DNA of 64,000 nucleotides, taken from positions 9,486,001 to 9,550,000 of the forward strand of contig OZ059894.1 of assembly GCA_964057225.1 (NCBI GenBank), given 5' to 3'. Shown here piece by piece: positions 11,645-27,795 of the stretch. The notes under the pieces were generated by a model. That model saw nothing but the letters and a program-made list of their open reading frames with translations, did not search any database and was not told the origin of the DNA. Source of the stretch: Auanema rhodensis. Its lineage: Eukaryota > Animalia > Nematoda. The position numbers and the translations under genes are program-made. Every line of letters begins with the position of its first letter. Positions within the stretch are counted from its first letter, which is position 1.

Positions 11645-13522
11645 ATGTCTAAAACTCGAGCTTTTCGTGTTAATGCTAAAGGTTCAGAAGATACTGAGCT
11701 CATTATTTATCAATGTAATTGCTCTTTTAAACTTTTTTTTTCTGTTCGTAAAAAATAAATGAAATTGTTATAGGTGAACGACTTTGTGGGAAGGGAAATT
11801 TTTCAAGCGTCTTTCAAGCTCAGCTTATTAAGCCTGAACAAAGAGCAGTTGCAATTAAGAATATCTGGTAATTATAAATATATATATACATAATTCTATT
11901 TTATATAATATAAAATATAAAATTAGGAATACACTGAATAAGCAGACCCGACGAGCTGATGATGAAATTGAAATTCTAACTCAGATTCAACATGAGAATA
12001 TAGCTTCATTGTTGTATTACTTTTCAAAACGTGTTGATGAGGATGTGAGCATATCTTTCATCTTATCAAAACTTATCTGTTTCAAATCTTATTTCAGTGG
12101 ATTATCAGTTTAGTACTTGAATACTTACCGAATACTATGATGTGCTATCGAGATAGGAGGAATTATTTCAATAAAATTGATATTCAGGTACGGTTATTTG
12201 AAATTAGTTAGGCTATATTCTTAGATAATACTCGAATCTTGATTTTCTTGTGTCAGTTTACTCAAAGTAAGCAAAGTTTCAGTTGTACTCATGGCAAATT
12301 TTTACGGCTCTTAGCTATCTTCATGCCAAATCTATAGTTCATATGGATTTGAAGCCATCTAACATAGTTCTTGATCATAAGGTTTGTTCATTTCATAATA
12401 TTCATTAAACTAAAGTCATAATTCAAGCTAGGTATAGTTAAGCTAACTGATTTTGGTAGTTCAATCAACCTATCTTCCAACAGAATCCCCACTAATTGCT
12501 ATCAAGTAGTGCATTGAGCTGAGCGATATATATGTACATTCATATATACGTTTATCTCTCTCATAATCACACTTATTCTATTAAATTAAACAGGTTACCA
12601 GATACTACAGGCCACCAGAGCTTCTTTTTGGTTCTATATCCTTTACTTGTGCTATTGGTAATCTGTTTGAAATCTTTGAAATGAAGCTAAGCACCTGTTT
12701 TCGATGTGTTTTTTTTGCAGATCTATGGTCAGTTGCATGTGTTATTTACGAAATTATAACTAATCGAATCTTGTTCAAAGAAAGTACTACTGAAAAACAG
12801 GTAACATATATAATGTTTATATACAATGTTTTGAAAAAGTAAAACACTATTGTTATTATTATTACTATTTATAATAATAATTATAATTATCATCATCATC
12901 ATCATCATCAGCATTATCATCAGATCGAACTGATAACGGACATTTTTGGTTATCCAACTATTGAAGATATCAGAAATATGAAAATTAGTCGACCACGAAT
13001 TGCTCGACGAGACGGACGTGGAATTGATTTGGTTTGTGTTTCTTTCTGTCTGTTAGTCTGTCAGTCTCCCTCTCTCTCTCTCTCTCTCTCCCCTTTCTCT
13101 CTCTCTTTCTATATACATATATTCATTAATCTATATTATATTTAATAAAAAATAACTATATTTCAAATATAAAAGAGAAAATTTCAGTTTATAGCTAATT
13201 CTGTGAGTGCTGATGAATTGCTTTTCTTGAAAACATTTCTATTTCTTGATCCTTTACGTCGAGCTTTTGCTTCAGCAGCTCTTGACAATGAATTTTTTAG
13301 ATATTTGATTGAGGTTTGTTGCACATAATTACTATATTTCTCTTTTTCTATATATATATATATATAGATATAGAAAACTATATTTATATAACTATATGTA
13401 TATAAATAATAATAATATTATTATTTTTGCTTTAGAATTATGATAATCCTGACATAACTGTGCGAATAATACCAGACTTTGTGAAAGTACAATTGGAAAT
13501 AAAAAAAAACGAAAAGAAATAA
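11645..13522 (+). CDS. GSK-3-like Ser/Thr kinase of the nematode gskl type (non-RD), ~11 exons
   Basis: Spliced translation gives GKGNFSSVF, VAIKNIW, HMDLKPSN (12340-), DFG, YQVTRYYRPPELLFG and DLWSVACV. Stop at 13520-13522 if the last exon is not spliced onward. Absent from the ORF track because the exons are short. Confidence 0.85.
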
Positions 13523-14390: not shown

Positions 14391-15992
14391 CTATTCTACT
14401 ATTGTCCCCTCGCCCATCCACCTCTTCATGAACGTTTGATGCTGGTAATGCTGAAATGTATGATGCCAATAGAAATGATGTGCACGTATGTTGTACATGA
14501 ATGATATATGCTGTAGTTCTGTATGTATGTATATGCTATTTCTCTGCTTCTTTGTCCTCCTCGATGAACGGTGCTGATGTGAACTGTCGCGGGTGAAGTG
14601 GTCGAAGAGGTGCTGGAAATGGACGAAGTGAAATGAATGCTTTTCTGATGACATTTTAGTAAGTTAGTCATTGACATGTGTTATAAGAATGAACAAGTAG
14701 CTTTAATAGAGAAATATAGAGAAGATAGGCATAGAGAGCCAGTGCATTCGATTGTATGTTAGAAGAAGAAGAGAGAGAGAGAAAACCCTACCTAAAGAGG
14801 GAGAGAAAGAGAGAGAATAAAGAAGAGAAAGAAGAAAAAGAGGAAGCTAAAAGAAACTTGTCTGATGTGATGTGCTTGTTTGCTGTTGTTTTCGTCCGCC
14901 ATAGTCCATCGATGTCCAGGAAGAGACAGACAGTCAATTGTGGAAGAGACAGACAGTCAGCCGAACTGTGCTTCACATGGCATACCAGTTGCAACTGCAA
15001 TTGAACAGAAAGATTAAGCTAGTCAATAGGCCCAGAAGAAAGAGATTGTTACTCTATCTAAGCGTATTTTTTGATTTTTTTTTCTGTTTTTCTATTCATA
15101 TTTCATTGCCAATATCTGCAATTGTCTTTTTCCCTATTCCTCATTTGGTTACCCCTCATAGCATTCTTCTTAATAAATGTTTTTTCTTTGAATCAATTCT
15201 CTTTACCAATCGTTATTTGATCTTTTGTTTGTAAATATTCACAATTTCAATTTGTTTTTCACTAAAATCTGTTCCGTCTGACATTACAAGAGAACAAACT
15301 ACTAAGCATTTCCTATTATTACTAAACCATTTCATTTTTCCTTTTTTTTTTGTTTCTTTTTTGATTATTTTTAATGTTAAATATTCAATTTTATTCATTT
15401 CTCTCACAACTTTCTATAAATACATTTGGTCTTCAACTTATTGTTCTCAGCTCATATTTTTCTTTTAAAAAAACAAATAACATCCCATCATCCCATCATC
15501 CCCCCCCCGCCCCCTGCTTCAATAATGACAATAAGTTTTCATTAATATTATTTTAATTTTTATTCTTTTATTTCTCAAATTAAATAAGAAAAACTAGTTA
15601 AAAGAGATTTTGTCTCTGTGTGTATGTGTAATTGTTTCCGTTGAAAGAGAAAGTATAACTTTTGGCAACATTTTCCTATTTCATATCTTTAAATTTGATC
15701 CTTATCTACTATATGTATTTCTTTTTCTAACTCTTTATTTGCAAAAAGAAACTAGTTTTTACTATATATGGAAAGAAGTTAAATAAGGTTCTTAAGCTAG
15801 ATAACATCCAACTAATTTCTCTCTTTTTCTTTCTCTCTCTAACTCTCTCTCTCTCTATCTTTATATATACATTCATCTTTATCTCTCTCTCTCTTTCTCT
15901 CTCAGTGTCTTAGTACGATATTCGTATACCGACAATCCCCCCCCTCTTCTACTATAACCCCAACCCAACGCTAGAATATACTTCTATATTCC

Positions 15993-16027
<35 letters not shown>

Positions 16028-19000
16028 ATCTTCCTCTTCCTTGTACTCGGATTTTCTCTGAATTTCCTTTCTATTTTAATAATTTTTATTCTGCTTACTT
16101 CTCCTCGTTTATCTATTTCCTCATTCCTTTCCTCTTCGTTTCAAAGCTCTTCCTCTTACGTGTGCTGCCATTACTTTCTCTCACCTGCTAAATCTTATAT
16201 TTCCTCATCTAGTTGTCTATTATTTTCATGAATTTGCTATTTTATGCTCGCAAAAACTGCTTCACAACTAAACTCTATCTCTCATTTCGACTTTATTTTA
16301 TCTTTTTTCATCCATTCTGATTGCAAACTATCATGACATCATTATTTGGAAAAAATAGAACTAGGGGATGGCCTTTATCTCTTCCTCTCTCTCTCTCTCT
16401 CTTTCTTTTTTTCCAAAAATCATTGTTGTCGTGCATAGCAGTGAGGGAAAACCGGGTATAATTCCACGGATTTTCATATGAATGATGGTCACAACATCAA
16501 ATTGGCGGCAGGCAAGCGTCCATCCAGCTTTGTTGTCATCAAATCCGGACCATTTTCGGATGTTTTGTGTTACTTTAGCTTTCGTTTACGTATAGTTTGT
16601 TCAGACAACGTTCTTTCTAATTCTTTCCAAGCATGTATTGTGGAATTTTGCAGAGTAATTTTGCAATAGATTGAAATAGATTGTAATCGAGTCAAAAAGC
16701 GGAGCTTATGCCTTCATCCTCTTCAGCAAAAACTTCTGATTTTTAATTTTTTTTCTTCTAAAATTCTTTGTAAAAACATGAACATGTCGAAATATGAACC
16801 CATTTTATACTATATAACCTGTAAAATCATTAAATAACGCTTTTCCAATTAGGGGTTTAGTCATTCTTCTGCTATTTCTCTCTCCCCCCCCCCCTTCTGT
16901 CATGTTTTCTTCCCTGTCTACCAATCTATCTACCAAGTGTTTTTTTTAGAAGAAAACGAAAAAAAACAAAAAAATTGCAAAGGCAATAAGCTAAAAAGAT
17001 CGAAAAACGCTACCACATGTTCTTCTCAGTTCATTTCGTCTCATTTTAAAATTTGGTCACTTATTTTGTAACAGCACGTTTAACAAGTTTGTGGGCTGAT
17101 GTACTACTGGAGCACCCAAGCCTACAATTTTCGGTTCCAATGAAATGATTCTGAACATTTAATTTTTTTTTCATCAAAGATAACAATCTGCGTCTAATAG
17201 TTCAGAGTTTTTTCAACAAATCTTGGTGATGACGCCAGAGGACGGGAAAGACTAGTGATTCTTCATGAAATATAAAAAATTTTGTTCCTTCATTTCTTAT
17301 TCAAAACGTATTTGCTTTCACATTTTTATATAAAAATATATATTTATCTATGTGAATGCTGTACTTTCTTTAATTTCACCATAATTTGTTGCAATTAGAA
17401 CTTTGTTCAATGATTTTCCTCTCCAAATATAGATCATATTCAAAAAAAATGCGCTTGAAAGCTTTTTTGCGTTCTCTTCCTTCCGCCTTCTCGTACTATT
17501 CGTTTTCGCTCTCAGTTTTTTTTGTGAGTATGTATGAGTGTGGGACCAAACTTCGATTAAAACGTTATTTGTTGAAAAGTTCTATATTTCAATATCTTAA
17601 AGTCGCTTTTACTCACCATCTACTTGTCTTACCATCGTTCTCACCTTCCAATTCTCATATTCCCATTCTATATACTATCTTTGTTATGCTATATCTCCTT
17701 CTGTAGTCCCCTTGTCGCACTCTAAATCCAGAGAGAATCAAACAAGAGAGAGAGTATATATATTTTCTTTCTTCCTCCATTTTTTTTGAAATGGAAAAGA
17801 AAATAGTATAAAGCAAAACACTGTTTTAAACATAATTATACAGTACAATTGTCCTTTCATAGCATAAAAAGCTGATAACTGAACCTTTCTATTCATATTT
17901 CTGAACATATAATCAGCTCAATTTATGAATTTATTTCTATTTTATGCAATAAATACATATATTTCTGTATACACATTTGTTTTTGTCATCTATCCCTTTA
18001 ACATTCTCTTACTTTTCATTTAAAATTTTTAAAGTTCTTCTGTGTAATTTTTAAAAGTGTTCCACATCAGCCTACCGACTTATTTCTGTTCACAAATCGT
18101 CATTATGTTGATTCTCTACTTTACTCTTCTAGTCTATCTATTCACCTTCATCTTTCTTTCTATCTCTCTCTCTTTTTCTTTCTCGTATTAATACTCTCTG
18201 TTCTAAAATCTCCTTCTCTCTTTGTTGATCTCTCTGATGCTTTCTACTCGTTTCAACCAATCGTAATGGGTGGTGAAACCTGTTCACCTGGTGCCCAAGC
18301 CGAGCCATCCTTTCTTCCATAAATACCATCAAATCGACAGTTTTGTAAGATTTAATGTCTGAAAATTCACGGCTAACATCTCAAGTTGGCTAATATCATG
18401 GATTTCAGCTTTTCGCAATTATCGAAATCTCATCCCCTACTTCTTCTGTCCATACAAATTCGTGCGAAATCACCTCAGCGATTCCACAATCTGCTTACCT
18501 CCTGCCGATCTGAAAAGTTATTGCAAATATGATTTATATAGTCTCGCTACTATTTCGTTCAAAAATTTTCATTTTAACGGCCAATCAAGAAAAAAAAATT
18601 CTGCTTATCGTGTCAACACGAGCGTATTGTATGGTCTCACATTCATGTGTTTTTTCTCGAGTTTTCTAGCAAATGCCAACTTTCACGGGAAAAACTGCTC
18701 TCAAATGAAATATTACAGCATTTAATTTTTTTTTTATTAAATATTTTACAGATTATTAAATATATAAAATTTTGTCAAAAAAAAAATAAAGATATAAGAT
18801 TTTAACATTACACTATTACAGCTGATTAAAAAACAAGAAAGCCATTGGTCAAATGGGCGTCGTTTGTTTGTTTTGTGGTCAAAAAACAAGATTTTTCGTT
18901 TTTTTCTTTTAAATAATTTTGTCGTTCCTAGCCACACTGACACTGCTGATAGTTGTAAAATTTTCTACTGAAAAAATCGTTTAAAATTCATATCTTTAAG

Positions 19001-20028
19001 ACTTTATTACGACTAATTTTGATTGAACTGATGCGATATATTATATTTTCATTCATTCATCTCTTTTCTATTTCGTTTGTTTTGGAATTTTTTTTATATG
19101 ATAGAAGATTTGAAAAGTTTAAAGCAATTGAAAATGAAATAAATGATCAACCGGTCACTGCGTGAAGAAAAAGTAAAATAAAAACGTGTAATGGTATTCA
19201 CGTAAACTTCCACGTCACGTATCCGCGTGGGCATCTGGGTTGCACCACCAGTATTACTGGCTTGCCAATAGAAAAAAGTGATGATATTTCAGAAAGTATT
19301 ACAGTTATGAATGACTAATGAGTTTATGTGATGATGAAATAAAGGAAATTGCGAAACAAAAACTTAAATATGGCTTAATGTCACATTCATATGACTGAAA
19401 TGGCTTGTATAACTATATTAAAAGTTTGAATAACATTCCAATGTCTCTATACATTCATTTTTCTGAGATAAAGCCAGAAATTCTTCTATTTTCTGACTCT
19501 ATTCACTGCTTTATTCGTCGGCTTTCATGAAAATAATATGCTTATTCAATAAATTTTAAGAACAATTGAATGCCCAAAAAGTGGTTTTCTACTTTAGCTA
19601 GCAATGTACTTGCATAATACTTTACATATTTTATTTCATTTTTACAAATTTAGGGCTTTTTTTGTTTTCAGACCAAGGTTCTTTCTCCCAACTTCTTGTT
19701 AGCATCAACGCAGTAAAGTAGCCATTCTGGATTTAAAGTAAACGAACTACTACTATCTCTTCATACTCAGCATTATCTTTCTCTTTTCTCTTCAATTTTT
19801 GAAACTCAAAAAGATATTTCTATTTTTCTTTTTAGTATTCTGACATATTTTATTCAAATAACTTTAAGCTCAATTAGATTTTAAAGTAAAAAATACATTT
19901 ATTTTGTTTATTATAGAAAAGGTCATGAATGTTGGTATAGATGAACATACATTTGTCATATTTCTATTACCTATTTCTTCTACTTACCTCACTCTTCTCT
20001 CTCTCTTCTCTTTCTTTCTCTCTTTCTT

Positions 20029-20082
<54 letters not shown>

Positions 20083-20391
20083 TGTTAAATCTTTGTATAT
20101 ACATATCAATCCTACCCCCCCCGCTCCCTCAAACAGAGCCAGAGCTTCTTGTTGACGTCGTTTAGTAATTTGAATTTGACCAAACTTGTCTTGTATAGAA
20201 ACAAGCAAGTATGACCTCGACGATAATTCTTGTCTCGTCATTCTTGCTGAATCATTAAGCTGAGACGAGAGATTTGAAGTAGCAAATATTGAACAAGAAA
20301 AGCTTATAAATTCGATTCTGTTCAACTCATATGACCTTCGATGGCAACCCCCGATAAGGTCTTCAATAGCTGTGGTAGCGACAGCCGCCAT
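14391..20391 (-). CDS. Putative ~122-aa protein of unknown function built with 11-nt and 9-nt microexons
   Basis: Exons 20391-20336, 18509-18499 (ttttcag|ATCGGCAGGAG|gtaagc), 18358-18288, 14994-14986 (ttgcag|TTGCAACTG|gtatgc), 14612-14391 are all phase-compatible: MAAVATTAIEDLIGGCHRRSAGDIKSYKTVDLMVFMEERMARLGHQLQLHLFDHFTRDSSHQHRSSRRTKKQ... There is also a 42-nt 5'UTR intron at 20452-20411 (gtaagt..ttcag). Confidence 0.5.
14919..14959. repeat. 18-nt direct repeat GGAAGAGACAGACAGTCA x2 (14919-14936, 14942-14959)
   Basis: Exact duplicate read directly. On the minus strand it is UGACUGUCUGUCUCUUCC, just downstream of the 9-nt microexon donor. Confidence 0.9.
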
Positions 20392-23300
20392 GCCAGCCGA
20401 AGCATATCAGCTGAAGAGAAGAAGAAGAAGACACGCTTCAAGCTTGACTTACACGATTGCTGTCAGATCGACTACAACAGATAGAGTATGGAAATGGCGT
20501 AGAGGCTTCTAGCAAAACGATGAATACGAAAAGGTTGAATGGCTACAGAGAGTGAGAGAGAGAGAGTGAGAAATCCTTCTTTCACCTCTATTTCTCTGCT
20601 TCACTTTCATTCAACCTTGTGCGCTTAATGTCGATCCTTATCGACGATTGCCATTCGAGTGACAGTCAGCATATGACGACGATTCTTTAGCTATCTTCCT
20701 TTCTCGTCATCTGTGTTTCTTTTTATTTTCCACTTTTTTTTACATGAAACGAGGTGAAAGTGAAGAAAAGATCTTAAAATGAGGGAGAGTGTGTCAGAGA
20801 GAAAAGGAGAGATAGCTAAGAAAAAATTAGAATTGATGACTCTCGTCCTCCACATAGCTAGAAAAATTGGATCGTTTTAATCTTGTTTTCTTCCGCTTTC
20901 CCATTTTTATATTCCGATGTTCATCTTCATCATCATCTATCTAGCCATACTAACATTACGTAACATCTTCCCCATTCTCTCTCGATTCAGTTTCGTTCAA
21001 ACAACTTTCTCATCCACACTAGCTTGTCTTTCATCTGAAGGACAAGGTAATTTTGGAAACAAAAAAGGCAGAAGCATTCTCACAACTTCATTCAAATTCA
21101 CATAGCTTTTACTCAAAAATGTTTTTGGTTTCGCAGCTCTAACACATGTACTGCTATGTAATTCGTATCCTAATTTACATTTTCTTTTTGAAATCGAAGA
21201 AGTCACCAATGACGCTCGGTTAAGAAGCCGTTCTCTTCTTCATGTCCTTCATCATCATCGTGATCTTTTTCTTCTTCTTTACTTCAGTTTTTAATAGATA
21301 ATTTAATCTTTTTACACTGTTACTCACTTACAATCTTATCTTCATTTAATCATTCTATGAAGGTAAATATATTCTATTTCCAACATTTTGTGAAAAATAA
21401 AAGAAAAACCATCGCTTATCACACTATGTTCTTTCCAAATATATCTTCCCTATCTAATATTTTCTTCGTACTGTTCCTTCGGCGGCCCCAAAAGAAATGG
21501 AATTGACGAGTGTTAGGTGCAATCAGGAAATACACGCTTCGTTTGTCCAAAGAAATCTTCAAGTACATATACTGTACAAATATTTTTCGTATTCTAACCA
21601 TGAATTTTAGTCTGGTTTTTGATTTTATCATTAATTTCTTCATTTATTCTTGCATACAATCACACTAAAATGGAATTCAGAATACATTTGAACCTGACTA
21701 TTACTTCCTCAATAGAGCTTCGAGTTGTTCGTCTTCTCAACGGTCAACCGCGCGGATTAAAAGTGCATGAACGAACAGCACGCTTCATACATCTGGGCAC
21801 TGAACTTCAAAAACAGAATCCGGTGATGACAATGCTCAGGACAATAGGCCAAAGCTCTTTCTCTCGTACTCGCTCCTTCATTCTCTCTTTGTGGTTTTGT
21901 TAACTGCAGTACTCAATATTAGCTGCCATATAGTTGAGATCAATGATTGGACTCTTTCTCTTTCTCTCTCTCTTTCTCTCTCTCCCTCTCTATTTTGTTC
22001 GTTTCTTCCTCTTATTATCTTTTTCTCTCATTCCCTCGTGTTCTCTTTGCTTTACTATTCTCCTTGCTCCATCTGTCTCTTTTTTCATTTTCTCAATTTC
22101 TCTTTTTCATTCATTTTTGCCACACCGGACCCTCCTCCCGTTGACGACAATCTGCTTCATGCATCCAACCTCTCCTTTCTCATCATTATTATCTTCTTCT
22201 GCCGTCGTTTCTCTAGATCAACAACAGTCACGATAGCTTGAAGTTTGACATATGAATCCAATGATACTCTTCTCCCCTCGTTCTCCCTTGCCGCTTAAAG
22301 TAAGCCCAAAGGTATTTCACGTGAGCTTCGTATCTCGATTTCATTTTCGCTTGACGGCGCTTTCCGACCGGTTGTATCTGGTTTTTTCCCGGCAAAAACT
22401 ATATTATATTCCATTTCAGTCATACACCAAAAGCATCAGCTGAGTGCTTACAAGCAAACTTTGTCCGCACTTATCACTATCGCATCACAGCCAAATTATT
22501 ACTGAAAAGCTGTACTATCATCGTTTTTACTTTTCGCTTTGTTTCTTTTTGCCTTATTTCAATATTAAGAAGAAACAACAAAGAGAATTTTTTATTTTGT
22601 TCCATCTGTGTTTCTCCTGTTTTTACTCTCAGTATATTCAAACGGCTTTGGAGTTCAAGTTCGAAAGGACAGATGGCCGTCAAAGCAGTTGACTTAGGGT
22701 TCAGTGTCATCGATGCGTTCTTCATCTCCTCGTTTCTCCTTCAAGGCTTCAGCTTGTCTTGATCATCATCAGACCATTACACATTAAACTGCATCAACAG
22801 ATAGCTGAAGATGCTATGCTATTTGCCAACGATTCAAACGGATTTTTGAAGTTTTTTCACTTCAAATGTCCTCTTAACTCTATCCAGATCGCAATTCTGA
22901 TGATTGATCTTAAAAGAAAGCTCATTGTTTACTGTTTACCTTGACATTTTTTCTATTTTTGCATTCTGATGGCAGAATGTCTTTCAGCTTCACTATGAAA
23001 TCAAAACTTGTTAGGTTCGTTCGCTAGCACCGAAATGAACATGTTTGTTTGTCTGTTTGTTTAGTATAGCTTATTGTTGGATGCTATAGTACATAGAAAA
23101 TTGGCTGCTCCTTTTCCCTCTCTCTACCACTTTCTCGTACTCTTCTTCTCTGTCTATTCATCTATTTTAAAGAAGCAAAATGTCTTACTTTCTCATTTCA
23201 TGTCATCAGGTTAATTACCTGCAGTACAGGTTTTCTTGCTTCTTCTCATGTTCTTCCTCTTCCAATTTTCATCATCGATGTCGTCTTCATCGTCGTTTTT

Positions 23301-25792: not shown

Positions 25793-27795
25793 ATGTGGAC
25801 AGTTTCGTTAGAAGGAGGTCCTCGACGTGTGAATCATGCTGCCGTAGCCATTGGAGATAACGTGAGTTTCTATTTGCTCCTGGAATTCGTAGTTCGGAGC
25901 ATCATCTTCATCACGAACATTTTAGGTTTATTCTTTTGGTGGCTACTGTAGTGGTGAACCCATGGACGCTGACAACCCAATCGATATACATGTCCTGAAT
26001 TCAAGTAAGTTTATAAATTTCCAATTTTCGGATAACTATTTCGACGATGGTACAATAATTCTTTTCTTTTCCATAAAAGTACGTGCTTTTTAATTCAATT
26101 TTTCTTAAGGAACTTATCGATGGCGCCTTCTCAAGGCTAGAGAACCAGATTATGGAGTTCGCGCAGAAAGTTCAATGGATGGTAGTGAATTTGAGGTAAA
26201 ATAATCTTTAGTATTCTGTTTCCTATTTTCTTTGACAAGCAAGTCACGTTTTTGCTCTGACACATACATGTTATAGAACAGTCTCCATGACGAGGAAACA
26301 GGCAGTTTCCACTCAAAATCCTTCCCATATCAAAGGTAACGTGACTGATTTTGGCTCATAAACTGTTTTTTATCTTCAGATATGGTCATACTGTAGTGGT
26401 TTATAATAACAAGGCTTATTTATGGGGAGGAAGAAATGATGAGTCGGGAGCAATTAATGTTCTTCATGAATTTGATCCTGGTGTGTGACTTATGTGTCTC
26501 GATCAGTAATATTATTCTTTGGTTTCAGAAACATTGACCTGGAGAATTATTCCAGCTACTGGAAGAGTTCCACCAGCTAGAGATGGACATTCAGCGATCG
26601 TTGTTGGTGACAAGGTTTTAGCAACCTTCACCGCTTAGTTGTAATGTTATCACCTTTGCAGATGTATATGTTTGGCGGATTTGAAGAAGATGCCCAGCGA
26701 TTTAGTCAGGAAACTTACGTTTTTGACTTTAAAACATCCAATTGGAGCGAGATGAGAACTTCAGTATGTTTTTTGTTTTTTTTGTTTCTATATAGTTAGC
26801 ATTTTAAAGGGATTCCCTCCTTTGTGGCGTGATTTCCATACTGCAGTTGGAATAGGGAATATGATGTATGTATTTGGAGGTCGTAGCGATCAAATGGGAC
26901 AGGTTTATCATTACAATTCAATTAATTTAATTTTTTTACAAATATTTAGTATCATTCCACTAGAGATGTTTACTGTGATCGTTTGAAAGCTCTTGATTTA
27001 ACTACTGGCGAATGGATTGAGCCTGTGGTCAAAGGTGAAAAACCATCCGGAAGAAGAAGTCATTCTGCCTGTAAGTAATGAACTTTCGATCACTTTACTA
27101 AGTTTTTTTACATTAAAGGGGAATATAACGGAAAGATGTACATATTTGGCGGATTCCTAGGAACTAAAAACGAACATTATAACGACCTGTATTGCTATGA
27201 CCCCCAAACTTGTGCCTGGACAAAGATCAAGGTAAGCTTCTAGGTCCCATAGTGCAGACGATGTCGTGGAAATACTTTCATTTTACATAAACACTCGTAT
27301 TTAGGCCCGTGGTCTTCTTGAATCTCCAAGCCCTCGTAGAAGACAGTGCACTGTTGTTGTTGGAGATAGAGTATACTTATTCGGTGGAACTATGTAAGTG
27401 TTTTTTTGCTCTGTCCCACTAATTCGATTGCTATTTGAATGAAAATTAAATAAAAAACTTATTTTCAGGCCAGTTGCTGGACAAACTGCCGGTCTTGTTG
27501 ATTTGGCAGATTTATATGTTTATGATTACGGTGAGTTCAAATAATGTTATTGCAAATATATTGTTATTTCTTTCGTTTCCAGCTCCAAGCTTATTCAATA
27601 TTGCTGCCCAAAATGTCATTAGACGAGGTCTAAGACCTTTAGCTCAACCATACTTACCTCATGATATCAAGTAAGATTTTCATATATTTTAGAACTTATT
27701 AATATTTTTTTCTTTTCAGCCAAGAACTCCGTTTTTTGACAACTCCTAATGCAATTTCTAACCCTCCTGCAATCAGACATGATGTAGCTGGATAA
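25793..27795 (+). CDS. Kelch domain-containing protein 3 (KLHDC3) ortholog, CRL2 C-degron receptor
   Basis: MWTVSLEGGPRRVNHAAVAIGDN|VYSFGGYCSG matches the KLHDC3 N-terminus. Kelch repeats RYGHTVV, ARDGHSA, WRDFHTA, GRRSHSA, PRRRQCT. BC-box-like PSLFNIAAQNV. Ends IRHDVAG*. Confidence 0.92.

Follow-up and report, generated by a model that had tools for sequence, protein, structure and literature searches.

We examined a candidate 11-nucleotide (nt) exon on the minus strand of a 64,000-nt stretch of the genome of the roundworm Auanema rhodensis (assembly GCA_964057225.1, contig OZ059894.1, forward-strand positions 9,486,001 to 9,550,000; hereafter the window, in whose own numbering positions are given unless stated otherwise). 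The assembly that holds the window comprises 181 Mb in chromosome-size contigs, and the candidate, whose splice signals are good, is located in a gene-poor stretch of it. The interpretation we favor, tentatively and at slightly less than an even chance, is that of a small gene confined to the lineage, with a nontriplet microexon that is mostly included, a protein start at the ATG at 20391 (ATG20391), and an out-of-frame upstream AUG at 20405 (ATG20405). The pieces would then represent the 5′ part of a small, spliced, minus-strand gene specific to the lineage of this rhabditid nematode, and its protein would start at ATG20391. The 11-nt piece (18509–18499) would be included in most or all mRNAs, joining the first exon in frame to 18358–18288, and the mRNA that skips it would be a minor by-product. 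On microexon-containing mRNA, ATG20405 would open a frame of 36 codons that runs across the true start as far as TGA 18331–18329; because of this overlap, it could only lower the output of the main protein, via competition between the two starts. The sequence itself shows the anatomy of the pieces, how rare the paired splice signals are, and a codon preference for the ATG20391 frame; from these we infer that we are dealing with exons, that mRNAs include the microexon, and that translation from ATG20405 takes place and has a braking effect.

All pieces of the candidate gene lie on the minus strand, in AT-rich surroundings (∼31–38% G+C across 18–22 kb of the window). A putative 5′ leader exon (20453–20546), with no ATG inside and an uncertain upstream limit, ends at the donor cgt|gtaagt at 20453/20452 and is followed by a candidate 42-nt intron (20411–20452, gtaagt...ttcag), which, should 20410 serve as an SL1 trans-splice acceptor, would instead form the last part of an outron. 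The first coding exon candidate (20336–20410, 75 nt, between tcttcag| and |gtcata) forms an island of 56% G+C, compared with 30% in the surrounding and intron sequence, and holds both start codons. One is the first AUG of the leader (20403–20405), 5 nt past the acceptor, which opens the frame we call B; the other is the AUG of the coding-like frame A (20389–20391), which is the likely protein start on codon statistics. Candidate intron 1 (18510–20335, 1826 nt) begins with the nonconsensus donor GTCATA and contains a (GA)n microsatellite at 19988–20079, (GA)n being the only tandem repeat detected. There follow the candidate microexon ATCGGCAGGAG (18499–18509, between ttttcag| and |gtaagc), which frame A would read as -SAG-; candidate intron 2 (18359–18498, 140 nt); and candidate exon 3, DIKSYKTVDLMVFMEERMARLGHQ (18288–18358, 71 nt, between ttttcag| and |gtgaac), whose frame is the best of its three. 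Beyond it, and speculatively, an 85-nt intron (gtgaac...ttttag) may lead to a short terminal coding piece reading NREY-stop (18188–18202), and an AATAAA stands downstream of this possible ending at 17935–17930.

Direct rereading of the minus strand bore out the coordinates, letters, and frame arithmetic that an initial annotation of the window had given for these pieces. That annotation described two out-of-frame ATGs in 20410–20336, each preceded by an in-frame stop, and we located the stops for both frames: frame A is closed upstream of ATG20391 by TGA 20409–20407, and frame B is closed by a TGA five codons 5′ of ATG20405, regardless of whether the 42-nt candidate intron (20452–20411) is removed or kept. 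ATG20405 lies 14 nt 5′ of ATG20391, frame B is the +1 shift of frame A, and both frames are open across 20391–20336, a total of 56 nt. The further claim that the 11 nt would determine which start is productive was likewise correct as frame arithmetic. When they are included, the ATG20391 frame stays open through the whole of the third piece, for 46 amino acids (aa), and the ATG20405 frame terminates after 36 aa, at TGA 18331–18329; when they are skipped, the ATG20405 frame is open over 47 aa and the ATG20391 frame stops after 20 aa, at TAA 18354–18352. In the microexon-containing model, the geometry is that of an overlapping upstream open reading frame (uORF), with ATG20405 out of frame and 36 codons that end beyond ATG20391. 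There is no AG between ATG20405 and ATG20391, so no acceptor could drop the first ATG while retaining the second. As one possible role for this arrangement, the initial annotation had proposed control by a uORF or by nonsense-mediated decay, and it is the uORF-type part of that proposal, an out-of-frame ATG20405 upstream of the start, that agrees with the interpretation we favor.

Codon usage points to frame A as the coding frame of the first exon. Stop-free exon pieces of the CCT chaperonin genes of the same genome supplied 1016 codons for training a codon table, and we calibrated it on the CCT genes by leave-one-out and on 263 scoring segments from five other genes of the window. Across 18 shared codons, frame A exceeded frame B by 17.9 bits and the third frame by 28 bits. 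For comparison, true exons exceeded their own +1 frame by 24 ± 9 bits (CCT, leave-one-out) or 17.4 ± 7.9 bits (the five other genes) and their own +2 frame by 31 ± 10 bits (CCT) or 26 ± 9.5 bits (the other genes). Because frame A is the +2 shift of frame B, a coding frame B should beat frame A by ∼26 to 31 bits, yet it loses by 17.9; among the true segments, 0/483 lost to their +2 frame by more than 2.8 bits. Along the minus strand, the highest-scoring codon segment in a scan of 13–21 kb was 20403–20353, and the coding signal falls immediately past both of the proposed donors, with exon 3 scoring +14.6/+8.1 per 18 codons inside and −3.1/−4.4 just beyond its donor. These scores carry the caveats that the comparison genes are highly expressed, that the exons taken from the window were chosen by codon score, and that a young gene may have weak codon bias.

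Since presequences have an unusual amino-acid make-up, synonymous usage was scored separately, using as comparison the real presequences of HSP60, SOD2, citrate synthase (CS), and MDH2 of the same genome (77 codons). On synonymous usage alone, frame B scored −1.1 per codon, below frame A (−0.3) and exon 3 (−0.2), and the four real presequences scored +0.5 to +0.8. At third positions, frame B has T in 2/23 codons (9%) versus 40/77 (52%) in the presequences (Fisher 2e-4) and G in 12/23 (52%) versus 11/77 (14%; Fisher 4e-4), and frame A showed no difference from the four presequences. As a side observation on these comparison genes, CS is present as two tandem copies (C3:13948070-13949150 and 13951172-13952252) with identical match scores, ∼3.1 kb apart, and the pair lies directly upstream of the hsp-60 gene (C3:13953795).

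These results bear on a plainer model, in which ATG20405 is the start, exon 1 is joined directly to 18358 to give a protein with a basic N terminus, and both the 11-nt piece and ATG20391 are coincidental. Such a two-exon join does not require a microexon at all, it places the start at a first AUG close to an acceptor, as in 4/4 control genes, and codon statistics would be a weak guide if the gene is young. We nevertheless consider it very improbable, given that frame B scores 17.9 bits below frame A where a true frame should win by ∼26 to 31, that its third-position make-up is opposite to that of real presequences, and that a strict microexon-like motif anywhere inside the intron is uncommon, arising in 7.4% of shuffles.

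The initial annotation had characterized the frame B N terminus as basic, amphipathic-looking, free of acidic residues for 22 residues, and similar to a mitochondrial presequence. The description of its charge and lack of acids stands: the N terminus carries a net charge of +3 with no D or E over its first 22 residues (the first acidic residue is E23, giving +2 over 23), and its maximum helical moment of 0.51 lies within the range of the real presequences (0.37–0.72), as do the moments of frame A (0.56) and exon 3 (0.57). What did not hold is its standing as a coding presequence, as its codon usage is that of an off-frame reading. The +1 frame of real exons is open in 47% of 22-codon stretches; of such +1 off-frame stretches, 14% are acid-free and 12% are acid-free with at least three K or R, compared with an in-frame figure of 1.5%. 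The open second frame and its acid-free, basic make-up are therefore no more than chance, and the resemblance to a presequence, which is real at a crude level, tends to be typical of off-frame reading of a frame rich in Ala, Gly, and Thr. ATG20405 reads like the start of an out-of-frame by-product.

Taken at face value, the same arrangement could also be a regulated cassette, the localization switch that the initial annotation put forward: inclusion of the 11 nt would yield the ATG20391 protein, and skipping would yield the ATG20405 protein, whose basic N terminus would send the same body to mitochondria. The 11 nt would then act as a toggle on what lies upstream of it, giving one body either a neutral N terminus or an overprinted mitochondrial presequence made from the same 56 letters. 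The frame logic for this is exact, ATG20405 is the first AUG and sits 5 nt past an acceptor, frame B is basic and acid-free over its first 22 residues with a moment in the range of real presequences, and Caenorhabditis elegans has documented nontriplet microexons by which a single stretch is read in either of two ways (PMC13247117). We found no positive support for the switch and regard it as improbable. The codon usage of frame B is off-frame and unlike that of the four real presequences, and its presequence look is common among +1 off-frames (47% open, 12% acid-free and basic). The consensus strength of the microexon signals does not suggest frequent skipping, and the overlap of 56 nt falls under the 60-nt dual-coding threshold of PMC13247117.

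The candidate microexon itself has strong signals. Its acceptor (TTTTCAG|A) is of the perfect nematode type, its donor is AG|GTAAG, and at 11 nt between acceptor AG and donor GT its sequence falls within the limit of 27 nt or less that defines a microexon. When both strands were scanned, ATCGGCAGGAG was the sole TTTCAG-N(3-30)-GTAAG site of the window. In dinucleotide shuffles, a strict copy on the same strand that is stop-free, restores frame A, and lies within the 1977-nt intron arose in 1.35% of cases; with looser signals (TTYAG..GTRAG), a frame-restoring copy arose in 13%. Because the frame with true-exon-like codons needs an insertion of 3n+2 nt, and the intron holds exactly one 11-nt candidate of consensus strength, a mostly included microexon is favored.

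Upstream of the first exon, a run of 204 nt (20609–20406) without any ATG precedes ATG20405. Only 4% of composition-matched shuffles were ATG-free over 204 nt, and ∼8% of the minus strand falls within ATG-free runs of such length. In the control genes (n = 4), the start codon was the first ATG and lay 0 to 18 nt past an acceptor-like site. The canonical nematode SL1 leader is present in the genome in more than 3400 exact copies, in 252-nt arrays, and introns of the CCT housekeeping genes are usually ∼30 to 50 nt; short introns of ∼40 nt and SL1 genes are both in keeping with the proposed 5′ end. The acceptor tcttcag| 5 nt before ATG20405 would fit SL1 trans-splicing, and the GTAAGT donor 42 nt upstream of it makes cis-splicing equally possible. 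The weak donor GTCATA of the first exon was initially considered an objection to the gene model. Among the 30- to 50-nt introns of the CCT and hsp-60 genes, the donors are degenerate (GTATCA, GTATTG, GTTATT, GTTTTT, GTTTTC, and GTTTGT), with G at +5 in 1/10, and the acceptors keep TTTYAG. Since real short introns of this genome have donors equally degenerate, GTCATA is no obstacle to the model, and we dropped the objection.

A real gene could also have a 5′ end built differently, and for the three architectures we considered, the joint probability is low. In the first, frame A would be joined through a weak acceptor, ttag|C, at 18372, 14 nt 5′ of the exon-3 acceptor, which restores the frame. 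In the second, the first exon would be long, with frame A open for 134 codons to the consensus donor GAG|GTAAGT at 19988/19987 and then continuing into the microexon in the same phase. Both read through without stops. Where 0.12 would be expected, the window contains four ATG-initiated open reading frames (ORFs) that reach 135 aa or more, and the 135-aa ORF of the second architecture (19984–20391) is one of them. The acceptor of the first architecture (gttag|C) is poor. In the second, the sole Pfam match of the extension is below threshold. We dropped the 135-aa ORF as strong evidence because 92 nt of it are a (GA)n run devoid of stops and because the codon signal of the extension is weak (+7.0/+3.3 per 18 codons). 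Low-complexity runs, namely this 47-copy GA/CT microsatellite (19988–20079) and an ATG/ATT/AAT-rich run on the minus strand at 12729–12920 that is read as poly-M/I/N, inflate ORF lengths and codon scores. In the third architecture, trans-splicing at 18510 or 18359 would lead to a start at ATG 18329 (MVFMEERMARL...). A TTTTCAG acceptor shortly before an in-frame ATG is the usual look of a trans-spliced start in this genome; this architecture leaves the coding-like first exon unexplained.

We searched for relatives of the pieces in several ways. No Pfam family exceeded its threshold when the open frames surrounding each piece were scanned, and no Rfam family came near its threshold. Protein word searches returned nothing for the open frame of exon 3 (among proteins of 44–140 aa) or for the frame at 14394–14654, and an exhaustive HMMER search was likewise empty when 31 aa around exon 3 served as the reference. 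No paralogues were found in the genome itself by DNA or protein search, and no metagenome loci resembling the pieces were found. As a gauge of these searches, the exon of an ASP-1-like aspartic protease in the window found its best database match at 61% identity (Auanema sp. JU1783, Caenorhabditis, hookworms). With 61% as the best match for a conserved enzyme, and with the genome's own proteins and those of close relatives absent from the collection, the blank searches carry little weight. In Auanema sp. JU1783, local tblastn with each exon peptide at two loci around aspartic protease homologues gave noise. Genes for an M16 peptidase, a C-type lectin, and an aspartic protease follow one another in the same order in 39.7–54.9 kb of the window and in JU1783 CALQYR020007254.1; this order is kept in one of the two JU1783 loci, and the side facing the candidate gene differs. 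There, CALQYR020007254.1 continues with a ryanodine receptor gene, and the window has K2P and Kelch genes at that place.

Several findings weigh against a microexon-containing gene that starts at ATG20391. Preceded by 204 bases without an ATG, ATG20405 is a first AUG that lies 5 nt past an acceptor, and in the four control genes the start codon was likewise the first ATG, 0 to 18 nt past an acceptor; given this position, an out-of-frame first AUG is costly for the interpretation. Exon 3 is only moderately coding-like at the scores given above, and 7% of all ATG-started open 18-codon stretches in the window match frame A in score. The strict microexon motif by itself is not enriched, as shuffles yield 1.56 copies per window and one is observed. 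A codon scan of the minus strand found no credible coding exon 3′ of exon 3, exon-by-exon searches found a homologue, paralogue, or family for no piece, and no contig from three ∼20-Mb sequencing runs under the species label, which share next to no words with the stretch, fell on 14500–20499, although this last result amounts to neither support nor proof of silence. The feature was, moreover, picked from a genome-wide read, and we roughly estimate that chance alone would give a genome several such constellations.

Some of these points also speak for the absence of any protein-coding gene, such that chance open frames, splice-like strings, and one TTTCAG..GTAAG pair have been joined together and any transcript would be noncoding. 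The reader that joined the pieces was free to pick any GT as donor, and donors are so degenerate in this genome that nearly any GT could serve. TTTTCAG is not enriched on the minus strand (3 in 7 kb), and the searches made found no relatives, paralogues, or run contigs. The open frame at 14391–14612 on the minus strand, once supposed to be the terminal ORF, is without coding signal; we rejected it as the gene end because it has no frame preference (−1.0/+1.3 bits per 18 codons), and it is probably not coding. Chance would still have to place the sole strong motif of the window where intron, strand, and length class are all suitable (p ∼0.014), so as to rescue a frame whose codon signal resembles that of true exons and ends at the proposed donors, behind an ATG-free leader and in a first exon that is a G+C island. 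On balance, we judge the absence of a gene to be unlikely, with a probability that is far from negligible.

Other segments of the window drew attention in passing. Antisense to exon 3, an open frame at 18224–18310 on the plus strand ends in ...GETCSPGAQAEPSFLP-stop and has a coding-like segment score of 14 bits; within it, the stretch from ATG18266 scores 23/26 bits over the shifted frames. This open frame matches no family and lacks obvious splice sites. A short coding-like segment on the minus strand at 16460–16549 (SGFDDNKAGWTLACRQFDVV...) lies in the gene-poor "desert" and has no good acceptor or donor signals. At 12681–12842 on the plus strand, an isolated open frame carries a motif resembling protein-kinase subdomain IX (DLWSVACVIYEIITNRILFK); further kinase exons were not noticed near it in passing, and it may represent a fragment of a gene. 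The nearest conserved-looking gene, with Kelch-repeat-like exon pieces at 26100–27520 on the plus strand, is oriented divergently to the candidate gene, ∼5.7 kb from the candidate 5′ end.

If the gene has the microexon and the ATG20391 start that we favor, it would be a small unannotated nematode gene with a tiny exon missed by gene finders and an upstream AUG, which is useful for annotation and otherwise ordinary, microexons and upstream AUGs being known kinds already. Were the localization switch true instead, it would extend the nontriplet dual-coding splicing of nematodes to the N terminus, with two exchanged start codons, and would be a compact way for one protein to have two cellular addresses. 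The codon-frame test, with conserved genes of the same genome as training set and with real exons and presequences as calibration, is reusable for other claims of dual-frame coding in this genome.

The candidate microexon, the putative uORF, and the predicted isoforms resemble several known systems. Out-of-frame upstream AUGs and overlapping uORFs, with leaky scanning, are a general means of translation control in eukaryotes. The candidate has this form, with an AUG 14 nt 5′ of the likely main AUG, in another frame, opening 36 codons that end inside the main coding region; unlike a plain overlapping uORF, it is defined only if the microexon is included. In dual targeting, a mitochondrial presequence is gained or lost as an in-frame extension, depending on the choice of first exon, splicing pattern, or start codon. 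The proposed switch would have a similar outcome, a single protein body that may or may not carry a basic extension, free of acids, at its N terminus; it differs in that the two N termini would come from the same letters in two frames and in that the presequence-like frame is without coding-type codons.

The closest documented class is that of the nontriplet alternative microexons of C. elegans, for which 54 dual-coding events have been reported, including that of the 28-nt tnt-3 microexon, with dual coding defined by at least 60 nt read in two frames (Athavudeen, Issac & Norris 2026, PMC13247117). As in that class, a nematode microexon with strong splice signals and a length that is not a multiple of three (11 nt here) would set the frame of a neighboring stretch. 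There, however, both isoforms share a single start codon and it is sequence 3′ of the microexon that is recoded, whereas here the recoded stretch would lie upstream, have two starts, and lead into a common downstream body, and the 56-nt overlap falls short of the 60-nt definition. In the fungus Trichoderma virens, skipping of a microexon in Xlr2 shifts the start 717 bases downstream, with loss of a domain (PMC11121469). There, as proposed for our candidate, the N-terminal part that can be made depends on whether a microexon is included or skipped; the alternative in the fungal gene is a far-downstream start and not a second frame of the same exon. Finally, C. elegans has neuronal microexons that depend on PRP-40 (PMC8378409), and like them the 11-nt candidate would be a nematode exon of 27 nt or less.

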